DNA from: Paragordius varius
Lineage: Eukaryota > Animalia > Nematomorpha
Reading direction: 5' to 3'
DNA: 64,000 nucleotides
Assembly (NCBI GenBank): GCA_964247055.1
Contig: OZ176051.1
Coordinates: 7,006,001 to 7,070,000, forward strand
Part shown: one piece after another, positions 1 through 63,676 of the stretch
Numbering within the stretch: the stretch's first letter is position 1
Layout: each line of letters starts with the position of its first letter
Notes under the pieces: generated by a model
Databases searched by the model: none
The model's input: the letters and a program-made list of their open reading frames with translations, nothing else
Told to the model about the DNA's origin: nothing
Translations under genes and position numbers: made by a program

Positions 1-3000
1 AGTAGCAGATAGCGTGTGAGATGAATTATCCGTTACTATAATGAATGAAGGAGATTGGGAACCGCTCACGCTAATATACTTGATGTTTGATAGGTCAGCC
101 ACATTCAAGACCATGTACTGAGATGTGGACGTGGAAGGGATTATTCTTTGGAGCTGTGATATTTGTTGTTGCGGTTGACCTGATTCGTTAGCACCTGATG
201 GTCGTTTGTTAGATGTGGCGGAAGGTATTCCTGCTGTATTATTTACTTTATGGCGTATAGAAGAAGAGGACGATAGATTATTGGCAGCATTAAGGTTGTG
301 TGCTGCAAAAAAGTAGGTTGAAGTATTAACATTGTAATTCACGGGTATGGCGGGAGAATCGGCATTAGCCAACAATTGAATGTGAGATTTTGTCGTGAGT
401 TGATGTGGGTGATATTGTTGTTGTTGCACAATAAGGGAATTATTTGATAGGTTTGAAGTACCGCTAGCCAGCGATTGTTTAATGAGTAAAAACTGTTGAG
501 GTAAAAATTGACTTTGTGAAACTGTGGAGGGTGTAGGCATATTTGTACTTTGTGATGAAAATATACCCCTTAAAGCAACGTTAGGCGTTGAATTTTGCGT
601 GTTATGTAATTGAGTAGCTGTAGTTAAATTCGTTGCGCCAAGTTGGTAGGAAGAGCCATATAAACCAGTGGCGTTAATATTTTGACTATTGATGGAGTAA
701 GTAGTCGTAAACGATAGATTTGAAAGGGTTGTGTTAAATGTGGAACGGTTATTAACAGAGAAATATCGATTACCATTGTTGTTGTGGATATTGGTGGGTG
801 TTATCGTATCTGAATTCACAGTAGCGTAAGTAGGCGTCGTTAAACCAATACTACTGATAGTTGAACCGTTTTGATTCAAATATATGGTTGTCGCGCTCAT
901 AGGTGCCGGAGATTCAAACATACTCTTGAGAACGGGATTATTGTTTGTCAAATTGTAACTGTAATATCCAGCACTAGAGTTTGTCATATTGCTCGGGTGC
1001 ATAATGTATTGTTGTTGCTGCTGTTTTGATAGCGATTCGCTATAATATACAAAGTTATTATTTGTGCCATTGTTATTGTTCAACGAAAACGTATTATTAT
1101 ATATCGTATGCAAATTTGATGGAGTTGTTGTGAGACTGAGACTTCGGGGCACCAATATATTTCCCAACTTATGGCTGGTGTTATGTAATCCGGAATTTGG
1201 TATGGATGCATTTATTACGTGTTTTGTTTGTGGATGACTAGTGGTTGTATAACTATTATACAATGTATGATAGTTGTGTGGTATGGCAAACGATATATTA
1301 TCATTACCGAGATAGGCATAATTATTGATATTGTTATCATTGGCGTGATTCATTTGAGGATTATTATGATATTGTAAGGGCGTCGATAAAGGTAAGCAAA
1401 CTTTGGTACCACCTGGTCCAATGTTCAAAAGCGCAGGAGAGTTTTGAAGGAGTTGTGAAGTAGTGGGTTGTTGTGACTGATATGTGGAAGTATTTGATAA
1501 CATTTTACTCAGGTGCAATTGTGTGTTTCGTTTAAAGTATGTCCGTAAACACGTGGGTGTATGTTTAAGTCTTTTAGGGATGCTAATAAAAGAAGATATA
1601 AATATAATAACATTAAAAGATGATGAAAATAGCTCTTTTTAGCAATGAAAATTTGTTAAAAGAGACGTACTTAGACTTAACCCTTCCCATCATACCAACT
1701 ATGGAATTGGGTGCAATTAAGCGTTTGGGTGATACATTAACATCGAACATTGAAGGAATATTGTGAAGATTAGAATAACTAAGGGAGGTATTGGTGACAA
1801 ATAATCCAAATTAATAACATAAAATGAAAACTATAAATTTAGTTTAAACGTGAATACCCAGTGGATTTGTAAAAAATTTATCTAGAAAGATATGTATGAT
1901 CCAATACTTGAAAAATAATTACCCTTTATTCTGATTATTTTGATGTTGGTCATTTTGTTTTGCGGTTGTGGTTTTCCGATTAATGGCAGGTGAGTATGTG
2001 AAAGGGGTGTGTATTATGGCAGTAGTTAAATGCGTGTCATGAAAAGTACCATAAAAATAATCAAGCTATATTTAGAATAAAATTTAGTAATAAATAAGTA
2101 AAAATCATGGAAAAATATTTTTGAAATCATTCAAATATAACAAATAAAAAAAGAACCAATGAATAGGTGTAATAAATGTGTGGGTACAAGCGATGTGCGA
2201 CTTTATAATGGTCATTTTTAAAAATATCATCATTTTTTGGTTCGACATTTTTCCCTGACGTCCCATCGTTGGTGGATGTGGACTGAGAATACATGTTTTG
2301 ATATAAAGCCCGTTCTAATGCTGCAAAAAACACACGAATCCTTCGATCGTAATCTAAGGAAACTAATGTAATGTCTTCTACCACCGAAATAGCCGTGGAA
2401 ATAGGATTTTCTAGCGTTGTTTTAACGATTGAATCATGGACTACTGGAGTCTCTGTAGGGCTGTTTTCCCTTGAGACGTGCGGAATGTCTAATGCCATAA
2501 ACAATTTGCGAATTCTCGATTTCGCCATTGTTGGGGAGTAATAGTTTTCGAAAAGGGTTGTGGTTTTATTGTCATCTTCTATTTTAGCCTTGGGCATATT
2601 ATTCAGATTATAAAAAGCATGCTTTACCCTTTTTAATCGCTCCAATTGGAGCAAAAGTATAAGTGGGTTAGTTGTTTCCCCGTTCATGGGATAGGGGTTT
2701 AGATACATGGCTTTTCTCAGAGCTCCCACTATACCATCTACCGTGTTGTAAGGTGGTGGTGGTATTTTATTCGTCGTTGGAGATGCATATGGTGATGATG
2801 ATACCTTAATTTTTGTGTTGTTATAATACTGTTGATCTGTTTCGCCTGAGCCCTTCCTCATTCTTTTGTTATGTGGCAACATTTGTGATGATTGGGTAGG
2901 CGTAATCATTGAGGATGTTATTTTACGTTTTTTGTTATGCGTCATCGTTATGGAGGATGGGTAAAAGTCATCTTCATTATTCTCTAAATGCTGATTTCCT

Positions 3001-6000
3001 GAATAACCACCTCCCGGATGATAATAGTAATAATAGTATGGATCTTGTTGTTGATTGTGTGAGGCGTTGGATGAACTTGTTTTCATTAAAGTTGTAAGTA
3101 TTTTCCTTTTATTATTAGCATTATGATTGTTGGTATTGTTATAATGGATTTCTGAATGGATGTTACTTGTAGATGAGGCAAGGGATGAAGAATCGTAATC
3201 TCGAGTGTATCTGTAGAATGTAATAAATAAAAATAATATATAGATAGTTAAATTTTTTGCTTTTTCTACTAAGCCATGAGTGTCCAGAATAAATGGCTTC
3301 GCGGGCCTCTTTTTTAATCAAAAAATCGGGAAACCGCATTTGGAATATAAACGTAAGATTGAAATAAATAATTAACTATAATACATTTTACCAAAATTTT
3401 GTGAGCATATAAATGTAAAATTTTCCGAAGATCGTGCACGGCCCGTGAGTTGTGTGTATACCACACCTGTACTATATGGCACTTGCAAAATACAAAATGG
3501 TATAATCGCCAAATTATCGTATACGCACATAATTTTCAAACATGGAATCATTATAAAAAAAAATAGAATGGTACGAAAATTCATATATATGTATACAGCA
3601 AGCTTTAAACATTATTTATCGCATAAAATTGTCTTGTTATATACCTTAAAGGTGGATGTGCTCCCTGACGTTTAGATCTTGGGTGTTGAGACGTAGAGGA
3701 GATGGAAAAACTTCTATTTTGGATGTTGTGTCTTTCGTCCTCTAAAACTCCCAGATAATCATGATTCTTATTTTGTTTGCGCAAAGAATTACTTTGCCTT
3801 TTGTTAGTCGTAGAAGATGACATGGCTTTTGTAGGTGAAAGGGTTCGTTTCTATTATCATAGTTATATATTTAAACTTTGTAAAAACAAAAAATGAATAG
3901 TTAGTAGAAATATGTTTATCTATATAAAACATGATAAAATATAATATAAGAGATGTGGGAAAATAGCAGACGATAAGGTATTTAAAAAAATTATTAATAA
4001 TTTAAATTGTTGAACAAAATTATTGTATTTCTTTAGCAGCGATTTTTCTTGCTTTCTGTTTCTTTTATTCTTAATTATCATTTTTTGTAAATAAAAAAAT
4101 CTCATGTTTGCCTTAAAGCTATTTTGTTAACAGACCATGAAGTCAATGATATGCAAAACAACGATAATATATATCAAACCTTGAAATCTAGGCCCCATTC
4201 AAACTGTTCTTTGAACGGAGAGGTATTTTGTATGGCACTGTAGGCGTTATTGGTGTAATAATACGAATCTAATCCATAGGGATATGAATAATTCTTAAGA
4301 GGAGAAATAGGGCTTTCTTCGTATAACATATTATTGTTAGTGGTTGTGTTATACAAACGTTTAGTTTCTCGATAAGTATCACCGGAATAATCTTGCAAAG
4401 CGAATCTGAAAATACGATATAAATATATGTATTGATATATTTTCCTAGAAATTGATTAAATATAAAACAATAAACTTTAATGAGATATTAATATACTCTA
4501 ATATTTCATTCCAATAATATATTTGAGAAAGAAATTCAAAAAATAAATAATATCGAATTGTGATATATATAGCAAATGAATGGTAAAAACTAATATTTAA
4601 TACATCTTACCTTGTTTTAAACGTATTTTGCGCAATGTTAACCAAATCAGTCTTGAAAGATTCTCGTTTTTCCACCAACTCAAAAATTTTTCTATTAATG
4701 AAAAAATAAGATTTCCAATTAAAACAAATTTTATAATCATTAATAAACAATGTCATACTGTGCTCTTATTAGATCCCGTTTAAGCTTTAACATTTTCTCG
4801 TATGAATATTCATCATTTTTCCGATTCTAATATAAAAAAAGAGTATTAAATAAAGCAAAAAATGGTATATACACTAAAGAGTAAACAGACAGTATTTCAG
4901 ATTTCAAATAGAAAAAGATCAAATTTAATAAGTTACCTTTCGTGTTTGCATTTTTTCAGCCCGCCTTCGAAACGCTATGTAAGGATTGGTAGCCGGATTA
5001 GAGTTATCATGTTGACTAATTGATGATGTGTTAGCTGTTATACTAAGTTTTTTCTCTGCGGCTGATAATACATGTGTTATCAATGGTTTTCCATTTTGCT
5101 TAGCTATTTTTGTTGATTTATAAAAAAAATATATATATATATTGATAAAAATTGTTTTTTCAATAAATATGAGACACATTACATACTATTAAGAATATAT
5201 CCAAGCCATCGCTACAAGTGCTAAACGCTATCATTTTTTTTTCAAAAAAATTTACTTCTCGTGTGATTATTCTTGATATGTCATCGACATAAAAAGGAAT
5301 ATAATATTGTTTCTTAACGATTGACCTTTAAACCGTAATCATCAAAAAAGTATCACATAGCTAAATGTTTTTTCTATAAATTTTTGTGTTAAAATATTCG
5401 CGATACTGTCACTAAATGAATCAAAAAATATAAAAATATATTTTAATAAATTTTTTATGCTCTATAAAATTTTGATAATTTTATAAATTTATGCTGTCAT
5501 ACTTTGACCCATGGTGGTTGAAGTAATAGAAGCAGTGATTGAGGAATTAATATTGGATAATTGTTGTGATAATGGTTGGGTCGGAGGTATGGCCATTATG
5601 CGCTTTTCAGTCAATATTTGCGGTGTCAAATTCATACCCTTAAATATTTTAAATAATTGAATTTAATTAAATTACATATAAAAATTTATAGAGTGGGTAT
5701 ATTTATTTTTCTCTCAAATAGAATATAAATGTACTTTTATAAATCGCTTTTTATGCCAATACACGTAAATGTTGCGTAGTATATCTTCATTCTCATTCTT
5801 TATCAAAACTTTGGCTTCGTCATAGGAGATCATCTAAAATATAAATAGATAATTTAAAACATAAAAATAAGAATTCTATTATATTTAAATAAAAAAGTAG
5901 TATCAGTTTAAATAAAATTTTTAATTATTCCCTAATACCTGATGACCACTAGCTTTTTCAAAGGTGTCCATTAAACGTTCAAAAATATCAGGTGTAATAA

Positions 6001-36693: not shown

Positions 36694-39600
36694 TTTATTT
36701 ATATCAAAATCATAAAAGTTTACACAAGTCAGTCTTGATAAAATTAAAGTCCTTACTTAATTTAAGAAAGAAAAAGAGAATCTAAAGTTGTTATGATTAA
36801 TTACATACATTGATTGATATCAAAGCTATAAAATAAATATATGTTACACAACTGTATGATTACTTTGACTCCCAGTAGTATTGTGGGGTGAATTTACAGA
36901 TTTCGCAAAATCATTACCATTCCCTTTTTCCACATGATTAATATTATGATTAGCTTTATACAAATGGCTGGTTGTCGCCCCAAAATTATGTGCCATATTA
37001 GTTAAGTCAAAGTCTGGAATCAGATTGGATCCTAATCAACAATGCAACAAATTTAATTTTATAGAACATATGTAAGGAGAAAGTTTATATTTTGATAAAA
37101 CGATAAAAATCCCAAACATCGCACTATAAAATTATATGATAGATATATGTGTTCGTTAAAATTTTATCATATACAGTCAAATCTCTTTTTATGCGATGCG
37201 CACGCATAAAAAGTCATGATATAAAGTAATGTGTTTATGTATTTTTGTTAACTTTTTTGGTTCAAAGAAATCAAAAAACTTTCGTCTGCGAAAATAATTT
37301 ACTTATACAGTAAAAAATGCACGAATTCGATGCTTTTGTAATTTTACCAGTCAACAAATAATACATATAATTTAAAGATGCTATAAACATACATAAAAAT
37401 ATGATCAAAAAATGATAAATTGAAATTAAAATACAATTTTTTGGTACTTAATTCGTTTTTTTATTATTTGGAATGTTTGTATGTTTCTTACAATGATATT
37501 CAAATTAATTACGCTTTGTAAATTAAATATCAAATATGATTTAATATAAAATATATGACTTTATTGAAAATACTGGTTCGTGACTAAAAAAACTTTGATT
37601 ATATTGTGAAAAACAAATAATTTATGGATAATAAATGGCTAAATGTCAGATGAATAAACCAACAAGTACAAAATTAAAAATCCACCAATCAAAATCGCGA
37701 AAACGATGTGGTGCTTTCATAGTTTAAACTAAGAGTTAAAAATCATTATCAAAAAAAAAGTCAACGCAAAAAAGGTTTGACTGCATACATAACCCATTGA
37801 AATTCATCTCTTTATAAATTATATTGATATTAAAAGTAGAGAGTAAGGCAACTATTATTGATATAATATTTACCCATTTCTCTAAGGTATATAATAATAA
37901 CTCAAATTAAATAAAGAGGAAAAAATGGAATACTATATCAGCATTAACCTGCCCTTTCAAAGCTTGTTAAAACAATAATTTAAAAAGCCTACCAATTATA
38001 CAAGTTAGGAACTGAGACATAAACCTAAATATGAATAATCTGATCTCAATTCAACTACCCTCAATCTTATAACGAAATGCTGTGACCAAAATTTGAGAAT
38101 AAAAACTGATGAACCAAAATAAAATATTATTTGATCATTACAATTTAGTTTTATAAAAGCATAAAAATAAAAGCTTACCTTGTTGGAACTGTAAAGATTG
38201 ATTTTGTTGTTGTTGTAACATCAAAGCCGCAAAATGCGCCGCCGCGGCAGCCATTGCCGGATGTGTTTGTTGCATGTGAACAGGATTTGGATCCATTAGG
38301 TTATTAATAAAATTATTGGAGTTTAGATTTACATTAAAGTTCTCATTTTTAACAAACGATGATGGTTTACTCACAAGGGTTGTCGTACTCAACGATGAAT
38401 TATCTAATGAAGAGGGAAAATTGGAAGGACTTGTAATATTAACATTGATGTTATTATTTATATTATTGTTCATGTGATAAGGATGTTGCAATGGAGGAGG
38501 TAGGTCAATTAGACCGGCCGTAGAATCTAAAATGTTTATGGATGATAAAAGAGAATAATTTATTTAAATAAAATCAATTTAATGGTAAAACGTGGCTATC
38601 AAAGATATTAAGATTTATATGTTAGCAGTGTTTTAACAGACAGCGATAATAAAAAAAAGTTTTATTGAATCTTTAAACGACACAAAAGAAATCTCCTTAA
38701 ATTATTACAAACATTGATGGTAAAACAAAACTAACAAACTTATATCCCACATAGTAAAAAATGATAACACAACGAATAAAGAGTTTCTTCGAATACATTT
38801 TGATTTTACTGAATTGCACGAAAATACCTTCTGAAGGCAGACCCATGAAAGCCGATGTATTAGCCATATTTGCCATAATCATAGAGTTATACAATGCTGT
38901 GGCTGTCCAATAAGGTACCGACCCACCTGCTCCTCCAACATAAGCGTTAAACAGTGTTGAGGGGTCCATCAATGCATTCGCATTAACATTCATATTTTGG
39001 TTCAAACAGTGCATACCTCCTCCTAACCCTTGATTATTATTCAACATATCAGCCATAGCTGCCATATTAGAGTAAAAAGCATTAATTGCAACAGGATTCA
39101 TCCCATAACCCCCACCGCTAAAATCGGTAATTGTCTTTTTTTCTGTCGTCCCGTATTGATTGTTATCATTTATGTCATTGTTTGAACTATTCGTAATACG
39201 ATTACCATCAAAACTCTTAAATGTATCAGTATTATAACTTTGGTCTGATGTATTGACAACTGAAGAATTAACAACATCTGATTCATTAGCTTTTCTAAGC
39301 GAAGGTGTTGTCGTCGTACCTGTATCTGAAACCCCTGTGGATTTTTGTGCGGTATTTGAAATCAACACATCTAAACTAATTGGAGTGGATAAAGAGGGAT
39401 GTTTATCACTCACAATCTTATTTGTTGAAGCGCCGTCTTCTTTATTTGTAACAAGCTTATTTTCATTTCCTCCTATGGTATTTGGTGTGATATTCAAAGA
39501 TTTTTCATTACTTATGGAACTTAAAATTGCCGTGGAAATTGATGGTTTATGAATCAGAGTTTTATCTAAATCACTAAAGTTATGTCTAATATCGTTGAGA

Positions 39601-42600
39601 AACGGTCCTTTAGTAACCTCAAGAAATTTTGTAGCCTGAATATTTATGCTTTCATCTGAATTTGCTACTGTAGTTTCAACTGCTGTTGTCATCGTAGTCT
39701 TTTCAATGTTACCAGTTTTAGAAATTGTTTCCATTATAGGACTTTTAATTGATTCTTTTGTGTTAGCTCTTTTATGGTTGACTGCATCAAACAAACTTGA
39801 TAGGGAGTCATCTTCTTTGCTTAAATATCGGATGGTCATGCGTTTTTGATGTTTTGCTGGGAAATGTTCTGTATTGGATGAATCATCTGCGTTACTTTCT
39901 ACCGTAATCGTTGTGGATTTAACTGTGATGGTAGTGGATGAAGTGTAATTATCACTTGGTGTACTACTATCTAACCTATTTGAATCAAAAGAAACTGTTT
40001 CTTTGAAATTGCTATTGGATATTTCCGGTATGCCACTTGTTTCATTATCTAATGCAATAACATTATTTGTTTGTTTATTATCTATCGAATTCAAATCAAG
40101 AGATGTTATGTTGAGATCATTATTGGATGTTTCCGGGATACCACTTGTTTCAATAGTATTATCCAATGCTGTGGAAACAAGAGTGGTAAAAGAATCAATC
40201 GTTTTATTATCCATCATATTTGAATCAAGAGATGATTCTTTAAAATTATTTGTGGAATCTGGGATACCTGTTTCAATTTTATTATGTAATGGCATTGGAA
40301 CAATTGGTGTTAAAAAGTTATCGTTTGGTTTATTCTCATCTACCAAATCCGGATGAAGAGATGTTTTATCAAAATTGAATTTTGTAAAGTTACTTGTTTC
40401 TCTTGTATCTGCAGTTGAAACTGGAGTAATTATAGAATTATCATTGCTGCTACTATCTATCTTTGAATCAATGGTTACTTTTTGACTTTCCTTTCCCTGG
40501 GTTTTGCTTATTTCACTTGTCTCTAGTAGAGATGATATATATAGAGTATTACTCTTTTCCACCAAATTAAGCGGTGGAGAATCTTTGCTAAGATTAACAC
40601 ACACACTAACGGATTCAGACTTAATTTCATTATCAGATTTCGACTCCGTCTCAACATTACCAAATTTATCTGCAACTTTAACATTTTGATCAGTTTCATC
40701 TGATTTTGGTACAATAACATCGGATTTTGAGTTACTCTCGGTTGTTTTTGTAGATTTTTCTTGTGAATCAGGTTTGATATCATTCGATGATTTGGAAGAT
40801 AAGGTACTATCTGCAATTGGACCATTTGTAAATTTTATGTATTTGGCAAAGTAGGAGCTTATCACTTGTTCGGGACCGGTGTAACCTTTAAGCGAAGTTG
40901 GTTCCATTACTTTTTCATTTGCCTTGGTTTTGTCATCATTGCTAATAGTATCAGTCTTAGTGTCAAACGGTGAATCAATGATTGCTTCTTTTTTTACGGC
41001 ATGTGTAATTGTTTCATTGTTTTTATCTTGTTTCAATGTTGATTTCTCATCAGATTTAAGGATATCATGATCAATGGGTTGTTTAGCACAAGTATCCAAA
41101 AATGTGGTAGTGTTTTTATCTTTTTTAATCACCGTATTATCGCTTTTTTGATGATGTATATCTTTCATTTTTGGTTTGTTATCAATTATTTTCTCGACTT
41201 CAAGTTTATCCTTTTGACAAGAAATATCATTTTTACTAGCTGTAATCTCTTTGTTAAGGATTTTCAAAAAGTTTGTTGTAGAATTTATACGCTTCGTTTC
41301 TGACGAAGTTTTTGCAATCTTTATCTCATCAAGAGAGCGATCAACGGATATGGCATGTTCTCTTTTATGCTGACTTTTGTCTGTCGATTCATTAGCATTA
41401 GAGTTATTATTATTAATATTTAGGGATAATTGAGTTTTTAACGGATTTTTAACTGAATGGGGCTTAATTTCATTATCTAAAAATGAAAGTTTATTATAAT
41501 TGAGTATGGATGTTAAAATAATAATTTTTAATCTTATAAATGATTAAAAAAGTTGTTCAAACATATAGTTTTTTACCTTACAAAAAAGGTAAAACAATTG
41601 ATATAAATGAAAAAATAATTAAACTGTTAAAATAGCCATTTTATTAATCCTTATATTAAATAAAAACTAACCGGATTTATGTCTCTTCTTGTCAGCATCA
41701 CCACTTGAAATCTAATATTGTAAAAAAGGGTATAACAATTCAGCAAATCCAACAGATCCATTTTCAAAAAAATTATTATATTAATGACCTTTTTCAAAAC
41801 ACCACTGACATTCTCTACAGTCGCGTTAGTAGGCGAAGGACTACGCGCTTTCCGTTTCGGTATTTTATAGCTACCCGATGTTATATTGGAGGTGGATGGT
41901 AACTTAACATTTGCCAATGATAAATTATTGGTTGATGATAAATCCTTGCATTTATCCTTCGTGGAGTTATTTATTGTTTTAAGCATTACAGAAGCAAAAA
42001 TACGTTGAATTTCTTTTTGTCGTTTACGTAACTTCTCAAATTGATGTATGGTGTGGGAGTTGGTCGAGTTTGTTTCCAATTTCGATTGTGGTATTTTCGT
42101 CAACAAACTATTGTAGTTTGGCGGAGATTTAAACAAGTAGTTAAGGGTACTATCCTTGGCATCCTTCTACAGAAGTAAAACGAATAAAATTTTTAATCTT
42201 AAGAAAATTTGTTATCCCTTAACCAAGATGATTATTAGACTAACAAAGAACATAAATTTTTACTATTATAGATAATTCCATCTAGAAACCTTATAACCAA
42301 AATTTAAAAAATAATTTAATGTACACTTTCAAACCTGAGAAATATGAATCTCGCAAAAACAAATGTAAGCCGTATAAACATATTTTTTATCTTTATGATT
42401 GCTGGAACTGCCGACATCTTCTAAAGCAGTAACATTGGGTGAAAGTGAATTATCCCGATTGTTATTTACATATTTCACAAAATCCTCACTGTAAAGTAAT
42501 TTAGATTTCAAGGCACTATAGAAACGATTAATAAAATAAATTATTGAAACTTTAAAAGTTATATATACAATGGGCACCTCATAATGACCCCGATGGTGGT

Positions 42601-53757: not shown

Positions 53758-53763
53758 TTTATT
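53758..53763 (-). terminator. AATAAA polyadenylation signal of the collagen IV gene
   Basis: AATAAA on the minus strand 15 nt after the stop of the extended reading frame. Confidence 0.5.
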
Positions 53764-53777
53764 CGATTGAAACAAAA

Positions 53778-56700
53778 TTAATAAACTTTGGATTTGTGAA
53801 CGTATGCTTGTTGTGGGTTTACATTTTTGGGTTGAATTTGTTGTTGTTGATGGAGTTGCTGTTGTTGTTGTTGATTATATTGCTGTTGTTGTTGACTATA
53901 TTGCATACGGGGGTCATGTGATCGGTTTCGAGGATCTTGACCCGCACCATAGGAAGAAGAGTAATACGATGTTCCGCCACTAGACTGCCCTTGGCCTCCG
54001 GGCTGGCCAGCAGCTACATATCCGTAAGGATAACTGGATCCTTGTTGACTCCCACCACTACTAGCTGCATATTGACCAGCAACACCGCTTTGACTATGTT
54101 GTCCGGCCCCTTGTTGAGAGGCATATTGTTGGGCTGAACCTGGCGGGTAATATGCACCTTGCTGTCCTAGTCCCTGTTGTTGTTGTTGTTGCTGAGAGGG
54201 ATAAGAGGGTCTTCTTGCAGCTGCCGCAGCATTATTGGGTAGTCCACCTTGAGCTGCTGTTGGAATCTGATAAGGGTACATATCTCCCCGACCTGTTGCA
54301 CCCGGATAACCAGGAGGAGGAGGAGGAGGAGCTCCACTGCCATCACGAATACAAACTTGACAGCGTGATACACGACTTCGGAGTTGTCCAGCTTTTAGGG
54401 TTTGAGCCTCGGGTTTCCTAAATTCGGCATCTCTATCAATGGTTGCTAACCAAAAACTGAGGGACGATGAGAAGTAATTGCACGTTCCCTTACCATGACA
54501 TTCTATAAAAGGTGAAGCTCGGAAATCTTCTAAGCAAGAGCCAGGAGATACTAACGATTGTCCAGTACCGTCAGCCCCGGCACCCGTATGCTAAATATGG
54601 GAAACATTAGATTTTTGAGTTGTTAAGAGCTTTTACGATAAATAATAATTTAAAATATATTATTATACCATAACAAAGCTATATCCATTCCATAGACCTC
54701 TCCATCCAGCTGGACAATTAGGTATTGTCATAGATTGGCTGTGTACTGCAATAACCTACATAGATACACACATATTATTAAACAAATACAAAAAACAGTG
54801 TGTGACCAAAATTAAAACGAATCCTGAAATTTATATATTGTAATATTAAGCGAATATACTTGAGCAGGCGTTTCACACACCACACATCGACTAATATATG
54901 GTTTAATTTCTTCAGCCGGGATCAATGACATGCTAGATTTCATTGGTTCTTCCGTAGATAACCAATAACTGTAATCATTCCTTGAGGCCACGTTACACAA
55001 ATTGTCTAGACTGCAGAAGAGGAAGGGCATAGTACTAAATTTGGTTAAACAACTTCCGGGTGAACCTAAATCTTGTCCGTGAGCTCGTTCATTGCCTTGA
55101 ACATGTAAAAGAGAATATCCTTCCCATAATGGATTCGTTCCTGATGGACATCTGGGAATCTCTGAAGATTGACTATGCCGTGTAAGGTAAAATCCACGAT
55201 TAGCGGCCGATGTTCCGGGTGGTCCTGCACTTCCAGGAAACCCGGGAGGTCCTGGGGGTCCAATTGATCCGGGAACACCTGAAAATAATTAAATGTATTG
55301 TACTTAATATTGAAAAAAAAAAGAACTGAAAAATATATAAATTGGTAAAGTTTTGATTTGCTGAGCTAGTACACCCAAAATATTATTTGAAGTGCATATA
55401 GTAAGGAAAATAAATATATCCAATTATATCCCATTATAAATTCCATCGATACGATTTAAGTTTTATACTGTGTAGATATTTTACCTTCGTATCCAGGTAA
55501 TCCAGGTTCACCTTTACCGCCAGGCATACCTGGTACCCCAGGTAATCCCGAAGGCCCAGGTTCGCCTTTGGGTCCAATGAAACCAGGAAGTCCAGGAGGT
55601 CCGGGTTTTCCAGGTTGACCGGGTGGACCTTGTAGTCCAGGCATCCCGGGTTCTCCTTTAGGTCCTTGAATCAACATGTTGGAAGCTATGGTTGGGCTTA
55701 AACCAGGTTCTCCTCTTGCCCCTTAATATCATAAATTCAAATAATTAATTTTATCAATATGTAAAATGGTGGAATCCCTAAGTAGGTAAATATTGTAGAA
55801 ATTTTATATATTAAGGGTATAGCGTGTGTTACCTGGCATACCATCCAAACCAGGTGCTCCATCCTTTCCAGGTAGACCAGGGAAGCCTGGTTCACCTTTA
55901 GCGCCGGGGAAACCAGGAGCGCCATCTTTTCCAGGGAACCCTGGAGCTCCGGCTTCACCTTTAGCACCTGGGAAACCCTAAAAATAGTAAATAAATTTAT
56001 GTGGCAGTAGATTTTTTGTGTCATTATCTTTTCAAATTCTTTTAAATTATTTAAAAGGAATCGAAAAGATATATTAGAATAAGCAGATGCTTTCTTTCGG
56101 AGACTATTTAAATAATTTTGGATATTATAAAATTTCAAGAGTGTAAAATTCTCATATTTCATTGCAACATTGCAAATGAATATTATTATAGCCACAATAA
56201 AAATATAATCAAAAAATCAAATTATCATTATGATTGTTTATGCTAATTTCATTATAATATTTATGATATCTCATTAATATGTACAGGTGATCCGGGTGGA
56301 CCTTGAGGACCCGCACTACTCATACCAGGAAGACCTGCTTCACCTTTAGCTCCTGGTAATCCAGACAAACCGGGGAAACCGGGATTACCTTTAGGTCCAA
56401 CAGGACCGGGTAAACCTAGAAAAGTAATAGCGTTACTAAATTTACTACGACAAAGGATGAGGGAGATATTTATTCGATATTCTGTTTACATACCTGGGGC
56501 TCCCGGAAAACCAGCATCTCCTTTTTGACCAGGGAATCCAGGGGCTCCCTGTAAACCAGCCCCTGGTAATCCGGGCAAACCATCCTTACCAGGATAACCG
56601 GCATCTCCCTTTTCACCTTTCTGGCCAGGCATACCTGCCAGTCCTGGGAAACCAGGTTCGCCTTGTAAACCGGGTGCACCTAAAAATATTAGATAATATA

Positions 56701-59700
56701 TATGATGCATGATTATGAAAATCATCATCGTAATTTTATACCATACTGAAAAAAATAAATACATTAAATAATCGTGTGTTTTACCTGGAGTCCCAGGTGC
56801 GCCAGATAATCCATCTAATCCTGGTGCTCCCATGGGCCCAGCTGGACCTGGCAAACCATCTAATCCGGGTAAACCGTTAAGACCAGGGTTTCCCTTTTGA
56901 CCGGGAAGTCCGGGTAATCCGGCCAGCCCTGGTTCGCCTTTGGCTCCAGGCGCACCAGGGAATCCTGGGGCCCCATCTTTTCCAGGAGCTCCCATTGGTC
57001 CAGGCGGAGCCGGCATACCTATTACAAAAGTAATGAATTTTCACAAACTGTTTCCCCCATTTTTATGTAGTTTGCAGCTTAATGTTTTCATAACCCGGAA
57101 GCGTTATAACAAAAAACGCGTAATATAATTAGATTTAAGAATCACTGCAAGTACTAATTTTTAATATATTGTAATTACCAGGTGCACCAACTTCTCCCTT
57201 TTTGCCAGGGAGTCCAGGTTGTCCCGATAAACCATCCAAGCCTCTGTCACCTTTTTGCCCAGGATAGCCATTCAAGCCGGGTAATCCAGCATCACCCTGA
57301 TGTAATTAAAAGTATTACTATCAAATTTTGGGAATATTAATTTTAGGATTATTTTATTAAAATTAAAAAAAACCTTCAGTCCAGAAAGACCTGGTAGGCC
57401 TGGGTATCCAGCATCTCCTTTAGGTCCCTGTGGACCAGGTTTTCCAGGCATGCCAGGTGCACCGGCCAAACCAGGGAATCCTTGATCACCCTTTTGACCA
57501 GGATAACCTATACAAAAAAATTTTGTTTTTTATATTATAAATATAAAACTATTTAATCATAATTTAATAAGCCATTTATTTTAGATTGTGAGTGACAATG
57601 ACCAAAAAATATTTGTCGAAAGCATCATTTTATACCTGGAGCACCATCCAATCCCCGATCTCCCTTGGCACCAGGGGCCCCAGGGAACCCTGATAGTCCA
57701 TCTTTCCCGGGTTGTCCTTGTGCCCCGGGCAAACCAGGAGCTCCATATCCAGCATCTCCTTTTGGACCTTGAGCGCCTGGAAGACCTGGTAGGCCAGCGT
57801 CACCAGGAGCCCCAGCAAGACCTATCAAAAACATGTATTATGGGGAATTTTATGGAAAAATTACATAATGGTTTGAAAAACAATAGGAATATGTATAAAT
57901 TTTAACGTATCCAAGAATATCCAAATAATTGTTACCTGGGAATCCGGCCTCGCCTTTAGCACCAGGGTATCCTGGCATACCTGCTTCCCCAGGAAGACCA
58001 GGTGATCCAGGCAATCCATCCATTCCTCGTTCACCTAGTATACAAATCAAAATTTGTTACATAAATATTTTTAAATCGTGCTTCTTTATCATCTAATATG
58101 TATACTTTTTAGCTTATTCAAGGAATGCAATCGAAAATTTACCTTTAGCTCCTGGAAGGCCAGATGTACCAGGGAAACCTTCTTTTCCAGGGTAACCAGC
58201 TTCACCTTTCATACCAGGTAAACCGGGAAGACCATCTTGTCCAGCTGCTCCGGGATAACCACTAGCACCAGGATTGCCTTTTTGACCAGCCAATCCTATT
58301 TTTTTCATTTTTTAAATAGTGTTTTTTAGTTATAGATAATATAAGCAAAATATGAATTAAAATGCATTCTTTAACATCCAATCATCCAAAAAGGTATATT
58401 ATAAAAAGAAAGAATTGAAAATCATATCCATTTAAAATTTATTATGCTAATTTTCGAAAAATGGGGTTTTAATTATACTTACCAGGTAATCCAGGTAATC
58501 CTTCTTTACCAGGAGCACCGGGAGCTCCAGGAAAACCGTCTTTTCCAGGGGCTCCTGGGTATCCATCTAATCCGCGATCCCCCTTCAGTCCAGCTAAACC
58601 AGGGAAACCAGGTTCGCCTTTGGCTCCGGGGAAACCAGGCGCTCCAGGAGCTCCTATCAATACAAATAATAATATAAAGGTTAGTATTTAATTGGTATAT
58701 TCGTTTGGTGTTAAAAACGGAAAATGCAGAGCAATCCATAATCAAAAAATACCAAACCGTCTAATCCTGGTGGCCCTTGTAAACCAGGTGTTCCAGGATA
58801 TCCGATACCATTATCACCTCTATCTCCCTTTTGTCCAGGGAATCCTGGCAATCCATCGGCTCCGGGAAATCCTATTGCGGGATTTTAAACAAATATGATT
58901 TCAAGTTTTAAGCAATAAAAAAGGTTAATATTTCTTCAAAAAAGTCATACCGGGTTCCCCTTGTTTACCAGGCAAACCGGGAGCTCCGGGTAGACCATCT
59001 TTTCCAGGGTAACCTGAATCACCCTTTTGACCCGGAAGACCGGGAAGTCCTGGTGTGCCTTGCACTTGATTAACTGCACCTGGAGGTCCAGGATTACCCT
59101 AAATATTATAAAAATTCAATTAGAAAACGTATAAAATAATATTTGTTATGTTTTTATATGCTTATTTAATAAGAAGATTTAGACAAGAATAGATATGACC
59201 GACTTGATCCACATAACCATTCAATTTACCTTTTGTCCAGGCATTCCCATTAAACCTGGTTCACCAGGTGCACCCATGAGTCCAGGCGTACCAGGATTTC
59301 CAGGAAGACCAGCTAAGCCGGGGAAACCTTTATCCCCAGGGGGACCTCTTAAACCTGCACTTGCTTGTCCAGGTAAACCAGGGGGTCCTTGAAGACCAGG
59401 TAATCCATCTATACCAGGTTTTCCGGGTTGACCAGGAGAACCTATACGACATAACATAAACAAGCATTAGATTTGAGATAATTAAAGACAAATTGTTTTA
59501 ATATAATGTGACTTTTATATAATAATCCAACCAAAATATACCGGAAAGTCCAGGGAAACCAGCGTCTCCTTTAGGTCCAGGTAAGCCAGGCGCTCCTGCT
59601 AAACCCGGGTATTGATCCAATCTAGCGGGTTCACCCTTAGCACCTGGGAATCCAGGTGCCCCAGGTAAGCCAGGCAATCCAGGTTCTCCCTTAGGACCAG

Positions 59701-62700
59701 ACAAACCCGGGGTCCCTGGGTAAGATGCTCCTGTTTCACCTTTGGCTCCGGGAGCGCCCGGTAATCCTGGAAGTCCATCTTTACCGGGTAAGCCATCAAA
59801 ACCACGATCACCCTGTATAGATTTATTTGTGTGTATGGAGAAAATATATGTGATATACTATCGCTGTTTAATTAATATTTTTCTCCTGCTACATTGCAAC
59901 CAATTTTATTGAAACTGGTTTTTTAGATTAGTTTGTTAGTATATTGCACAAAGGATCGATCTTTTGCAAATACATGATTAAAGTACAATTAATATCTCTC
60001 ATGAATTATATTTTCTTACTTTAGGCCCAGGGGCACCAGGGGCGGCAGGCAAACCGGGGGCTCCGGGGAACCCATCTTTTCCTGGCGCTCCAGGCAATCC
60101 GGGGAAGCCGCCATCCCCTTTATCGCCTTTGATTCCAGCTGAAGCTGGGGGATATACAACTTGACCCGCTTCTCCTTTGGCTCCGGGGATACCAGGTTGA
60201 CCATCACGTCCGGGAGGACCCTACAATAAGCAAATATATGTTGCAATAATATTTTTCTATTGTTTTCACATTTAAAAGTTAATAAAAGGCTTATTGTGAT
60301 AAAAATGATTAAAGATTTGTGTAACATTATGATCGAAAACATTAACTAAAATGTTTAAACAAACACTTCATGGATAAAGTATAAACTTACCGGAATACCA
60401 TCAAAACCAGGGGGTCCAGCCTCTCCTTTGTCCCCCTTTTGTCCAGGATTTCCACGGAAACCTTGAGGACCGGGTTCTCCGGGTATACCTTAAGACGAAT
60501 AAAAAAGAAACATATCATAAATTTTTGATTTACAATCCATAATTTTATAATGCTAAATTATGAAAATAGGCTAAAACACGATGAAAAATCGCTATAAAAA
60601 ATAATAGGAATATTGATTTTGAGAAAAAAATATTTTTTATTAATTTTATTTTTATTTCAAACATGAAGGTTCCCCTAATATACCTAGCTAATATCCAGGT
60701 TGTTTTATAACACAAAAAACTTTAGAATAGAATATGTGGTTTAATTATCAAAATTATATGCAGTTAGCAGCTTTTGTAAAAACACTGTAAAATTATATGC
60801 CTACTCAAAAATTTATTATAGGTAATGAATGTTAAATCATATAAACTTATAGATTAAATCTCTACCGGGTATTCCCATATCTCCACGATCACCAGGTAAG
60901 CCCGGGAGCCCATCCAAGCATTGGCGACATTCAGTTCCGCGTTCACCCTTGCCTCCCATCGGACCAGGAAGGCCATCTAAACCAGGGATTCCTGGATTTC
61001 CAGGCGGTCCTGGAGGACCGGAGGGACCGGGTGGCCCAACCAAACCAGTTCCTTGACCGGGTAAACCCGACGAACCTATTTAAAATATATATATATTCAA
61101 GAGTATAAATGACACGAGGGACTAATTATTAGTTTTTCCTAAATTATTGCGTAAATAATATGATTAGCCGATTGGAGCATTTTAAAATATGCATTTATTT
61201 CGTTTTTTTACCTTTTATTAAGCTATCGGCATTAGGACGAACTAGCTATCTAAAGTTACTCACACTGTATTTTATTAAATACTTTTAGCTAATAAAATAA
61301 GTTATTGGAGAGACAGATATAATTGAGTATATTTGACTAAAAATCAATCGAATTTCGATAAAATACATAGAAATCATACCAGGAAGACCGGGATCTCCAC
61401 GATAACCAGGTAGCCCTGGTAAACCATCTTTTCCAGGCCGTCCTTCAGGACCAGGGGGTCCAGACAAAGAATATCCCGGTGGACCTTGATCTCCTTTGGG
61501 TCCAGGGAACCCAGGTGTTCCGGGCAAGCCAGCTGGTCCGGGAAAACCGGGTGCACCTTAAAACATTATGCCATGAATTAGGTTTTATCCAATTTGCAAA
61601 CAAAATATTTACTAAATTTTAAACGAAAAGAATTTAATATAAACCATCGATTCCGGGATTCCCTTTAATTGAAAGACCGGGTAACCCAGGGGAACCTGGG
61701 AGTCCATCTCGGCCAGGGGCACCTGGTAGTCCTTGTAAACCAGGAAGGCCAGGCAATCCATCAATACCTATTTAAAGGGAAAAAAATATCAATAGTTAGT
61801 TGCCATATTTATTAAATATATTTATTTTTCTTTTATTGTAATTTGAGAGATTGGTTTTTGCGATATTATAATAATATATTTTTATTTATGATTGTATGAC
61901 AATTTTTTAGTTAAAGTGTAAATTTTTATCGTCTTCACGTATATTTTTTGCATTTATATGAGTGGTTTCATCAAATATTTGTTTAATTTTCTCTTCAAAA
62001 TGTGTTACATTAAACCTTACAACTAACCTATGCAATTAATGATGATATACTTAATCTTTGAATAAATATAAATCTGATGAGACTGTTATAACTAATGCTC
62101 ATAAAATCGTTAACTGATTGTTAACAGTAAATAAATTTGAAATCAAGTTTACTAAGGAATTGTCCAATATTTTAAAATATACAATAAAACTTTGCTATGA
62201 TTTTACAATTCTATGTCTTAAAAAGCCGTTAAATAAAATTGTACAATAAATTATTATATATGTTTTAAGTTGTAAAGATAGAGCTAAAATTTATCATTTT
62301 AACATTTTAACCTGGCAATCCCGGAGGTCCGGGTAATCCTTCGGGCCCTTGGGGACCCATTGGTCCTTGGACTAATTCCCCTTGGCTTGGAGGACCAGGT
62401 GGACCCTTTATTTAAAGAGAGAGATTAAAAATAATTGTTTGCAGAATTTCGCATAAACATAAACGACTGAACTTATGTGCATTTTAATTTTTGAAACAAT
62501 ATTTTACCCATTAGTGTGTTGTTTGTTTGTATTATATTGTACATATTATGTATGAATAAACTTACTGGGGCTCCTTGTGGACCAGGTCGACCTTCGAATC
62601 CTTGTTCACCTTTAGCTCCCTAAAATTATTTGTAATATAAAAAAATTCTATTAAATTACTAATTTTGTAGCAAAATATACCATTTACAATTCAATTTCAC

Positions 62701-63676
62701 CCTTAAACAATTCAATTTCACCCTTGAACAATTCAAATTCACCCTTAAACAATTCAAATTCACCCTCGAACAATTCAAATACACCCTCAAATAAAATATA
62801 AGTTTTTTAAGATTAAAAAAACATATATTTCGTATTAATAATTAGTTATATGAGTTCGAAAACACGTAATTTATTTTTAGGGTGAATTTGAATCGTTTAA
62901 AGGTGAATTTGAATTGTTCAAGGGTAAATTTGAATTGTTCGAGGGTGAATTGTTCGTGAATTTCAAGGGTGAATTTGAACTGTAAATGGTAAATATATTT
63001 AATCTTCCAAAGTTTTAATCTTCTAAACTTTTAAAAAGCAATCAAGAAGTATTTATAAAATGATTACCGGTCTCCCAGGCATACCAGGTGCACCAGGATA
63101 TCCAGATTCTCCTTTGGGACCTTTTTCACCCAATGGCCCGATCGGACCATCTCTTCCTCGTTTACCCTAAATAGGATAAATACTTGCAAACCATACAAAT
63201 ATTAATTACAATAGATTTAAATCGTCTCCGACTTTCGAAAAGTATTACTTTTTTTTCATGCAGAGTTAAAACTAAGAAACGTAAACCTAATAAAGACAAA
63301 TATTAATATTATAGGGATGACAATAACAAATGTAATATAAAGATGATCACATTTTTTTAAACATACTTATAACTTAAATGATAATAATTTAACGTGTAAT
63401 TCAAAGTTCCAAATTTCAATATATCGCAACCCCAAACGATAGGTTACATTAGCAAATAACTAAGTTTTCAAATGTGTGGCTGTCTTTATAAGTTAAAATA
63501 ATATTTGTCTTTATAATTTTAATTTTTACTTTAAAAAAATAGGCTGTAAAAAAACTTACCCGTTTACCAGCTGGTCCAGGTAATCCCTTTTCCCCAGGAA
63601 GACCGGGGAGGCCAGGAATTCCATCTTTTCCTGGTCCGCCGGGGTAACCAGGTGCGCCGGCATCTCCTTTTTCGCC
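53778..63676 (-). CDS. COL4A1: Collagen type IV alpha chain (alpha1-like NC1), about 27 exons in window, 5' end beyond 64000
   Basis: Many Gly-X-Y exons with interruptions ([21 protein letters not shown]). NC1: GFYLTRHSQ...[10 protein letters not shown]...[31 protein letters not shown]...ISRCVVCE|VIAVHSQ...|[39 protein letters not shown]...[24 protein letters not shown] and ECHG-xGTC spacing are alpha1-type. Confidence 0.95.
62678..62991. mobile_element. Foldback-like element: TIR plus inverted arrays of a ~21-bp unit
   Basis: TACCATTTACA / TGTAAATGGTA ends; (AATTCAAATTCACCCTYRAAC)n at left, mirrored at right. Confidence 0.75.

Follow-up and report, generated by a model that had tools for sequence, protein, structure and literature searches.

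To our knowledge only one natural tail beyond the NC1 domain of a collagen IV chain is described in the literature, that of Drosophila Viking. The Viking tail was called unique, "not found in Cg25c or any vertebrate chain", its function is unknown, it was missing from the purified NC1 hexamer by mass spectrometry, and it has been proposed to be a removable assembly blocker, with low-confidence AlphaFold-multimer models in which it can reach the hexamer interface (PMC10694668). Conservation of Viking tails is poor even among Drosophila. The C-terminus of an NC1 monomer is at its apex, beside the loop-crevice-loop site (PMC8093946), and in humans C-terminal appendages of 8 amino acids in COL4A3 'Zurich' and of 74 amino acids in COL4A5 cause Alport and Goodpasture disease (PMC8093946, PMC8100070). 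Here we discuss a collagen IV gene in a 64,000-nucleotide stretch of the horsehair worm Paragordius varius (assembly GCA_964247055.1, contig OZ176051.1, positions 7,006,001 to 7,070,000), which we refer to as the window, in which the reading frame of NC1 runs on into a tail of 190 codons. A first-pass annotation made from the letters of the window had drawn attention to this tail, and had correctly stated that Viking also carries one.

The gene is the main basement-membrane collagen gene of this AT-rich genome. It is on the minus strand and extends past the window end (64000), with its 7S region and gene start outside the window, and it has the long interrupted Gly-X-Y domain upstream of NC1 that characterises collagen IV. 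NC1 is encoded by three exons (55278-54860, 54755-54669 and 54590 onward), of which the last is 54590-53778, with an AG at 54592-54591 that supports its start. The spliced NC1 has 221 amino acids with all 12 conserved Cys, and is collinear with human alpha1 NC1 residues 3-225 with no gap, which gives further support to the start of the last exon. The first half is ungapped against the alpha1 NC1 in PDB at 259 bits (query residues 4-116 being chain residues 3-115), the NC1 part of the last exon (80 residues, ending in CQVC) is ungapped against residues 146-225 of the alpha1, alpha5 and alpha3 NC1 domains, and the residue count of the 29-codon exon between them fits the gap between the two aligned halves. 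Pfam PF01413 matches both halves, with the C4 domain at residues 2-81 of the last-exon product. The codon for the last NC1 Cys (54353-54351) is that of residue 225, four residues beyond which the human alpha1 chain stops. In mapping onto PDB 1LI1 chain A, the sulfilimine residues Met93 and Lys211, the chloride-switch residues Arg76 and Asp78, and the Arg76-Asn77-Asp78 motif are all kept, in agreement with the annotation. As judged from its sequence the NC1 domain is canonical and intact, and it is predicted to be competent for hexamer formation and cross-linking.

The assignment of the host as an alpha1-like chain, also made in the first-pass annotation, is borne out by the bit scores of both NC1 halves and by the NC1 tree. 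The first half gives 233-259 bits against alpha1/3/5 chains and 188-209 against alpha2/4 chains, and the second 117-126 bits ungapped against alpha1/3/5 and 92-103, with an inserted residue, against alpha2/4. The extra residue of the ECxGxGTC loop is absent, as in alpha1-like chains. In a tree of 85 NC1 domains the alpha2-like clade, with a value of 97 in the Shimodaira-Hasegawa-like approximate likelihood ratio test, leaves out the window chain, which falls among invertebrate alpha1-like chains in a placement that is itself without support. Taken at the level of sequence, the host chain is alpha1-like.

The tail begins directly after the last Cys, and its coordinates and those of its parts are given in Table 1. 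The frame is open from there to a TAA codon, and the earlier description of the tail as rich in Gln, Gly, Tyr and Ser, with 18 Tyr and a GRGD, agrees with the composition count and the reading frame. The counts are Q 43, G 28, S 21, A 20, P 20 and Y 18, and C, E, F and W are absent; Q+N+G+S+Y account for 61% of the tail, and there are 10 basic residues, of which 3 are Lys, and 4 acidic ones. This is a composition of the prion-like or elastomeric kind, rich in Gln, Asn, Gly, Ser and Tyr with few charged or hydrophobic residues, and nine of the 18 Tyr are in small-residue contexts. The tail carries one N-X-S sequon and an RR pair at residues 46-47; a furin-type R-X-[KR]-R site was sought in it and not found. 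The RGD sits outside any Gly-X-Y run, in a presumably non-helical context. The gene also has RGD inside Gly-X-Y runs (GDRGDNG, GDRGDMG and GYRGDPG, at 58801-58872, 60858-60911 and 61372-61461 on the minus strand), and RGD sites within a collagen triple helix are generally hidden in the native helix. A Pfam scan of the last-exon product found no domain in the tail, and an AlphaFold2 single-sequence model of the last exon has a predicted local distance difference test score of 42 even over NC1, and hence is uninformative on disorder. An AATAAA does follow the stop codon as had been reported, at a distance of 14 nt and not 15.

That the tail is coding is indicated by several properties of the DNA. 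Its GC content is 0.44-0.52 along its length and drops to 0.21, the level of introns and intergenic DNA here, right after the stop, so that the earlier statement that the tail is GC-rich like coding DNA holds. At codon positions 1, 2 and 3 the GC content is 0.70, 0.52 and 0.24 respectively, the same pattern as in the NC1 exons (0.50-0.53, 0.56 and 0.29-0.31). The share of G+A+R+P among its residues is 0.39, compared with 0.13-0.21 in other open reading frames of the window, while the third codon position is at the genomic 0.24. With the first two codon positions and these amino acids high and the third position at the genomic level, the amino-acid make-up appears to be held against the AT pressure of the genome. 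Stop-free frames are rare among mononucleotide shuffles of the tail (0.00015 of them), and each of the five remaining frames has 1-23 stops; with so few shuffles remaining open, the open frame is not due to chance.

Variation in the tail was followed in contigs, spanning the exon, from four DNA runs, drawn from three samples in two studies, under two organism labels. Among the ten best-supported tail differences that were listed, seven are synonymous and in the third position, and three are non-synonymous, of which two are Leu to Gln. Length differences are frame-neutral, one contig having six gaps with a net change of 0 and another a net change of -3 bases. Run X4 contigs have an unaltered RGD, and in X2 the variants on either side of the motif do not change it. 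At the junction of NC1 and tail there is no difference among those listed from the four runs, which bears on the concern, raised with the first annotation, that an assembly indel might hide a stop. The polyglutamine-rich end of the tail at 53838-53904 consists of imperfect (CAA)n repeats that have a periodicity of 21-24 nt, and differs in run X4, which is from the other labelled organism. Neither AATAAA nor ATTAAA occurs within the last exon, and no exon-like stretch was seen downstream of the tail before the next gene, where the DNA is 21% GC. Given these coding signatures the tail is very probably translated, and it appears to be maintained by selection.

Three other readings of the frame were considered and rejected: a separate small gene from the ATG at 54281, as GC content and frame are unbroken from NC1; an assembly indel masking a stop, on the contigs of the four runs; and an early poly(A) signal, as there is none within the last exon.

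The tail has no detectable relatives by sequence. The 270-amino-acid last-exon product gave NC1 matches only in searches of 5.8 billion proteins and of a representative library of 1.84 billion proteins, and the tail alone gave no protein match at E <= 0.01. The best score in an ESM Atlas search with the tail was a meaningless 0.76, BLASTP against the Gly/Ser/Tyr/Gln tail of P0168 found no match, and an exact look-up of the 167-amino-acid open reading frame found no record. One BLASTP match, with the fragment P0242, extends 17 residues into the tail, over IR, the proline run and the next Tyr; past about these first 17 residues the tail has no alignable similarity to database tails.

Tails as such are another matter. 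We located the last NC1 Cys in protein matches and measured what follows it, taking non-redundant tails of at least 15 amino acids, and chain type was assigned by the five-residue Cys spacing in the ECHGxGTC loop of alpha1-type chains. The survey left out 39 hydrophobic, junk-like tails, several of which begin MKNLW (apparently TGA read as Trp); in P0210, P0193, P0203, P0213 and P0194 CQVCMKNL is followed by W and hydrophobic nonsense, and these look like artefacts of this kind. The tails range from 15 to 283 amino acids, and of the 57 tails 53 belong to alpha1-like and four to alpha2-type chains, in a sample that the query biases to alpha1-like chains and that says nothing on the rarity of tails among alpha2-like chains. 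Alpha1-like chains with tails include those of the isopods Armadillidium nasatum (KAB7504339/KAB7504342; 255-283 amino acids with Gly/Tyr/Ser-rich repeats and several RGD) and Idotea baltica (at least 84, with GYGG-type repeats), and also Diaphorina citri (KAI5702207; 126, Tyr/Asn-rich), Gonioctena (107), Portunus trituberculatus (about 52), Pollicipes (39, with eight prolines), Gryllus (37) and Nesidiocoris (31). Fragments from Logan, JGI and Tara that carry no taxon label, P0168 and P0242 among them, are of the same kind. Cnidarian, hemichordate, sea-cucumber, bivalve and vertebrate chains in the survey sample end 2-5 residues past the Cys.

Alpha1-like tails are thus common in crustaceans and insects, and the Paragordius varius tail is another case and not a one-off, and yet we found no description of alpha1-like tails in the literature. 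The first-pass annotation had placed the novelty of the tail in its alpha1-like host together with its composition, and the former does not stand, given the 53 tails on such chains and the long Gly/Tyr/Ser-rich ones of isopods among them. It had itself said that homologous tails, if common on alpha1 chains of many taxa, would refute it, and this has come about in the sense of analogous tails, which are not sequence-homologous.

The other tails differ in make-up, being variously acidic with Tyr, Arg/Pro or Asn/Tyr. A further group of alpha1-like tails (P0018, P0119, P0151, P0143 and P0032) is highly acidic and rich in Tyr, with runs of Y, D and E, and the P0153 tail has acidic Ser-Gly-Asp repeats; tails of the P0018 type and that of P0153 have possible tyrosine-sulfation or glycosaminoglycan sites. 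P0326, from Diploscapter pachys, leaves NC1 one residue ahead of the last Cys (SRCQV, then SDL) and goes on for about 170 unrelated residues, and this model is probably a mis-spliced annotation.

The stretch of the window tail that adjoins NC1, with a basic residue followed by a proline run, Tyr and the RGD at 21-23, resembles its counterpart in other tails. RGD is present in eight of the 57 tails where 1.9 are expected from per-tail shuffles (P ~0.0003), and the five permuted tripeptides have 0-3 occurrences; none of the 39 junk-like tails has RGD. Six of the RGD-bearing database tails have an RGD 2-30 residues past the last Cys. Proline runs were counted in 15 of 59 tails where shuffling gives 5.6, and the window tail has both elements. 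The pattern suggests that the NC1-adjacent part is more than random filler, and since RGD is over-represented in tails across taxa the idea of an exposed RGD gains indirect support.

We suggest that an alpha1-like collagen IV gene ends here, and that its 3' part encodes an intact NC1 and a translated, unstructured 190-residue tail of a recurrent class, which serves as a flexible, RGD-bearing appendage at the NC1 apex. We think this reading probable, while allowing considerable room for others, and it should be understood that we infer translation, disorder, apex exposure and every functional role. The class is a barely described one, common on arthropod alpha1-like chains and now found in Paragordius varius. 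In solved structures the NC1 C-terminus is at the apex beside the loop-crevice-loop site, and tails would therefore hang free outside the NC1 trimer or hexamer, clear of the interface between trimers, and each protomer would carry two of them provided that the chains are in the usual 2:1 ratio. The proline run could act as a stiff spacer, presenting the non-helical RGD to integrins or other cell-surface receptors, and such docking may help to keep protomers in place, or to bring them into position, at the sites of network construction, with hexamers forming at the cell surface. The distal 160 or so residues, rich in Gln, Gly, Ser and Tyr, would be lineage-specific filler that may self-associate, form peroxidase-driven Tyr cross-links, or be trimmed after secretion.

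A bolder form of this proposal is that alpha1-like chains in moulting animals (arthropods and the nematode/horsehair-worm line) have long possessed functional tails with a proline spacer and an exposed RGD, which dock protomers to integrins for hexamer formation at the cell surface, and that the long Gln/Tyr segment was added in Paragordius varius and cross-links or self-associates. We regard this as doubtful.

Several observations weigh against the apex-appendage reading. Every run that holds the locus is genomic DNA, with contigs that cross introns, and five runs marked "RNA?" under the same species label have next to none of it. The tail has no detectable homologue, so that conservation beyond close relatives is not demonstrable, and some of its length is made up of simple CAA and CCT repeats. 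The enrichments of RGD and proline runs are exploratory, coming from a sample picked by similarity to an alpha1-like query and mostly without taxon labels, in which the tails may be non-independent. The absence of the Viking tail from the purified hexamer (PMC10694668) means that the window tail may not persist in the matrix, and in humans the 8- and 74-residue appendages at the equivalent position are harmful (PMC8093946).

The main rival is a latency propeptide as proposed for Viking, in which the tail folds over the hexamer interface or keeps protomers soluble and is cut off at the site of assembly. We consider it unlikely as the whole explanation, although it has the best claim of the alternatives, and it can coexist with an apex appendage, being compatible with a docking role before cleavage. 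The loss of the Viking tail from the purified hexamer and the models in which it reaches the interface (PMC10694668) are in its favour, as are the length of the window tail, its freedom from hydrophobic residues and its RR pair. But the tail has no furin-type site, and it is on the chain type expected in two copies and not on a Viking-type chain; a pure blocker does not predict enrichment of RGD across tails, and the Viking proposal is itself unproven.

A somewhat less probable case is that of a tolerated, functionless extension, arising from a shift of the stop codon and repeat slippage in animals in which the apex tolerates appendages. The lack of sequence conservation between taxa, the wide spread of database tail lengths, the microsatellite-like CAA and CCT tracts and the poor conservation of Viking tails within Drosophila would all fit. 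However it leaves without explanation the GC-rich first and second codon positions kept where non-coding DNA is 21% GC, the 7:3 synonymous excess among the listed changes and the enrichment of RGD and proline runs, and the harm done by human appendages (PMC8093946) speaks against an apex that is indifferent to them.

The first-pass annotation had proposed a persistent prion-like, elastomeric module, with phase separation and dityrosine or transglutaminase cross-links, and this we find improbable. In its favour, dityrosine can also be made by peroxidasin, which forms the sulfilimine bond of NC1, and isopod tails are likewise Gly/Tyr/Ser-rich. The remaining support is from composition, that is the 61% of Q+N+G+S+Y, the spaced Tyr, and 43 Gln with 3 Lys, and from a resemblance to the FUS low-complexity domain, resilin and the repeats of high-molecular-weight glutenin. 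The fold prediction from the single sequence is uninformative, the tail lacks the repeat unit of real elastomers, and make-up varies so much among tails that no single material property is conserved.

That the tail is not in the protein at all, through an assembly error hiding a stop or through splicing or early polyadenylation just past CQVC, is very unlikely, for although the runs with the locus are all DNA and a weak match to a splice donor, GTATTC, overlaps the codon of the last Cys, four independent DNA runs span the junction with no difference listed, the exon has no polyadenylation signal and no exon-like stretch follows it, and an untranslated region or an intron would hardly show codon periodicity and a synonymous bias.

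Table 1. Features of the collagen IV gene in the window (positions in the 64,000-nucleotide stretch)
Feature	Position	Strand	Remarks
Gly-X-Y (collagenous) exons	55208..63676	-	about 40 Gly-X-Y runs; two short chance runs only on the plus strand
Exon with end of triple helix and NC1 residues ~1-116, including Arg76-Asn77-Asp78 and Met93	54860..55278	-	AG acceptor 55280-55279; GTATAT donor 54859
29-codon NC1 exon (VIAVHSQ...GYSFVM), NC1 residues 117-145	54669..54755	-	AG 54757-54756; GT 54668-67
NC1 part of last exon, residues 146-225, with Lys211 in TLKAG and last Cys	54351..54590	-	Pfam C4, E-value 9e-26
Post-NC1 tail, 190 codons, rich in Gln, Gly, Ser, Ala, Pro and Tyr	53781..54350	-	frame open, in frame with NC1
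Six-proline run, tail residues 8-13	54312..54329	-	(AGG)n repeat on the plus strand
RGD, tail residues 21-23, within GATGRGDMY	54282..54290	-	from the reading frame
TAA stop codon	53778..53780	-	end of tail frame
AATAAA, likely polyadenylation signal	53758..53763	-	14 nt past stop; the sole one from last-exon start to 53463

Elsewhere in the window the long open reading frames at 2127-3086 and 38138-41267 (minus strand) are of low complexity, rich in Asn, Ser and Thr, and unlike the GC-rich collagen tail; one of them begins with six Y and then Gly.

With regard to wider significance, the NC1 hexamer is a key joint of every basement membrane, and in humans eight extra C-terminal residues cause kidney disease. 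In many invertebrates the alpha1-like chain often has a long tail of natural origin, and that of Viking, though described as "unique", is an instance of something more widespread. Taken alone the locus is no great surprise; the interest is mainly in the wider phenomenon and its recurring RGD and proline-run elements, the occurrence of which above chance makes tail function a testable comparative question.

In comparison with the FUS N-terminus, resilin and high-molecular-weight glutenin repeats, the tail is alike in amino-acid make-up and spaced Tyr. However there is no homology and no regular repeat unit, the tail is extracellular, and the resemblance is one of composition only. The human disease appendages are alike in adding residues at the same C-terminus at the NC1 apex, but those are mutations, whereas the window tail is the native gene end. 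Viking, also an invertebrate collagen IV chain, has an unstructured, poorly conserved extension that begins in frame immediately behind the final Cys of NC1; it is however the alpha2-like partner chain where the window host is alpha1-like, and no sequence similarity between the two tails was detected. Among the alpha1-like tails of the databases the isopod ones differ in having Gly/Tyr/Ser/Glu/Arg repeats where the window tail is Gln-rich with polyglutamine tracts, but the database tails share with it the chain type, a low-complexity, Tyr-rich character, a length of tens to hundreds of residues and, near the start, often a proline run and sometimes RGD.

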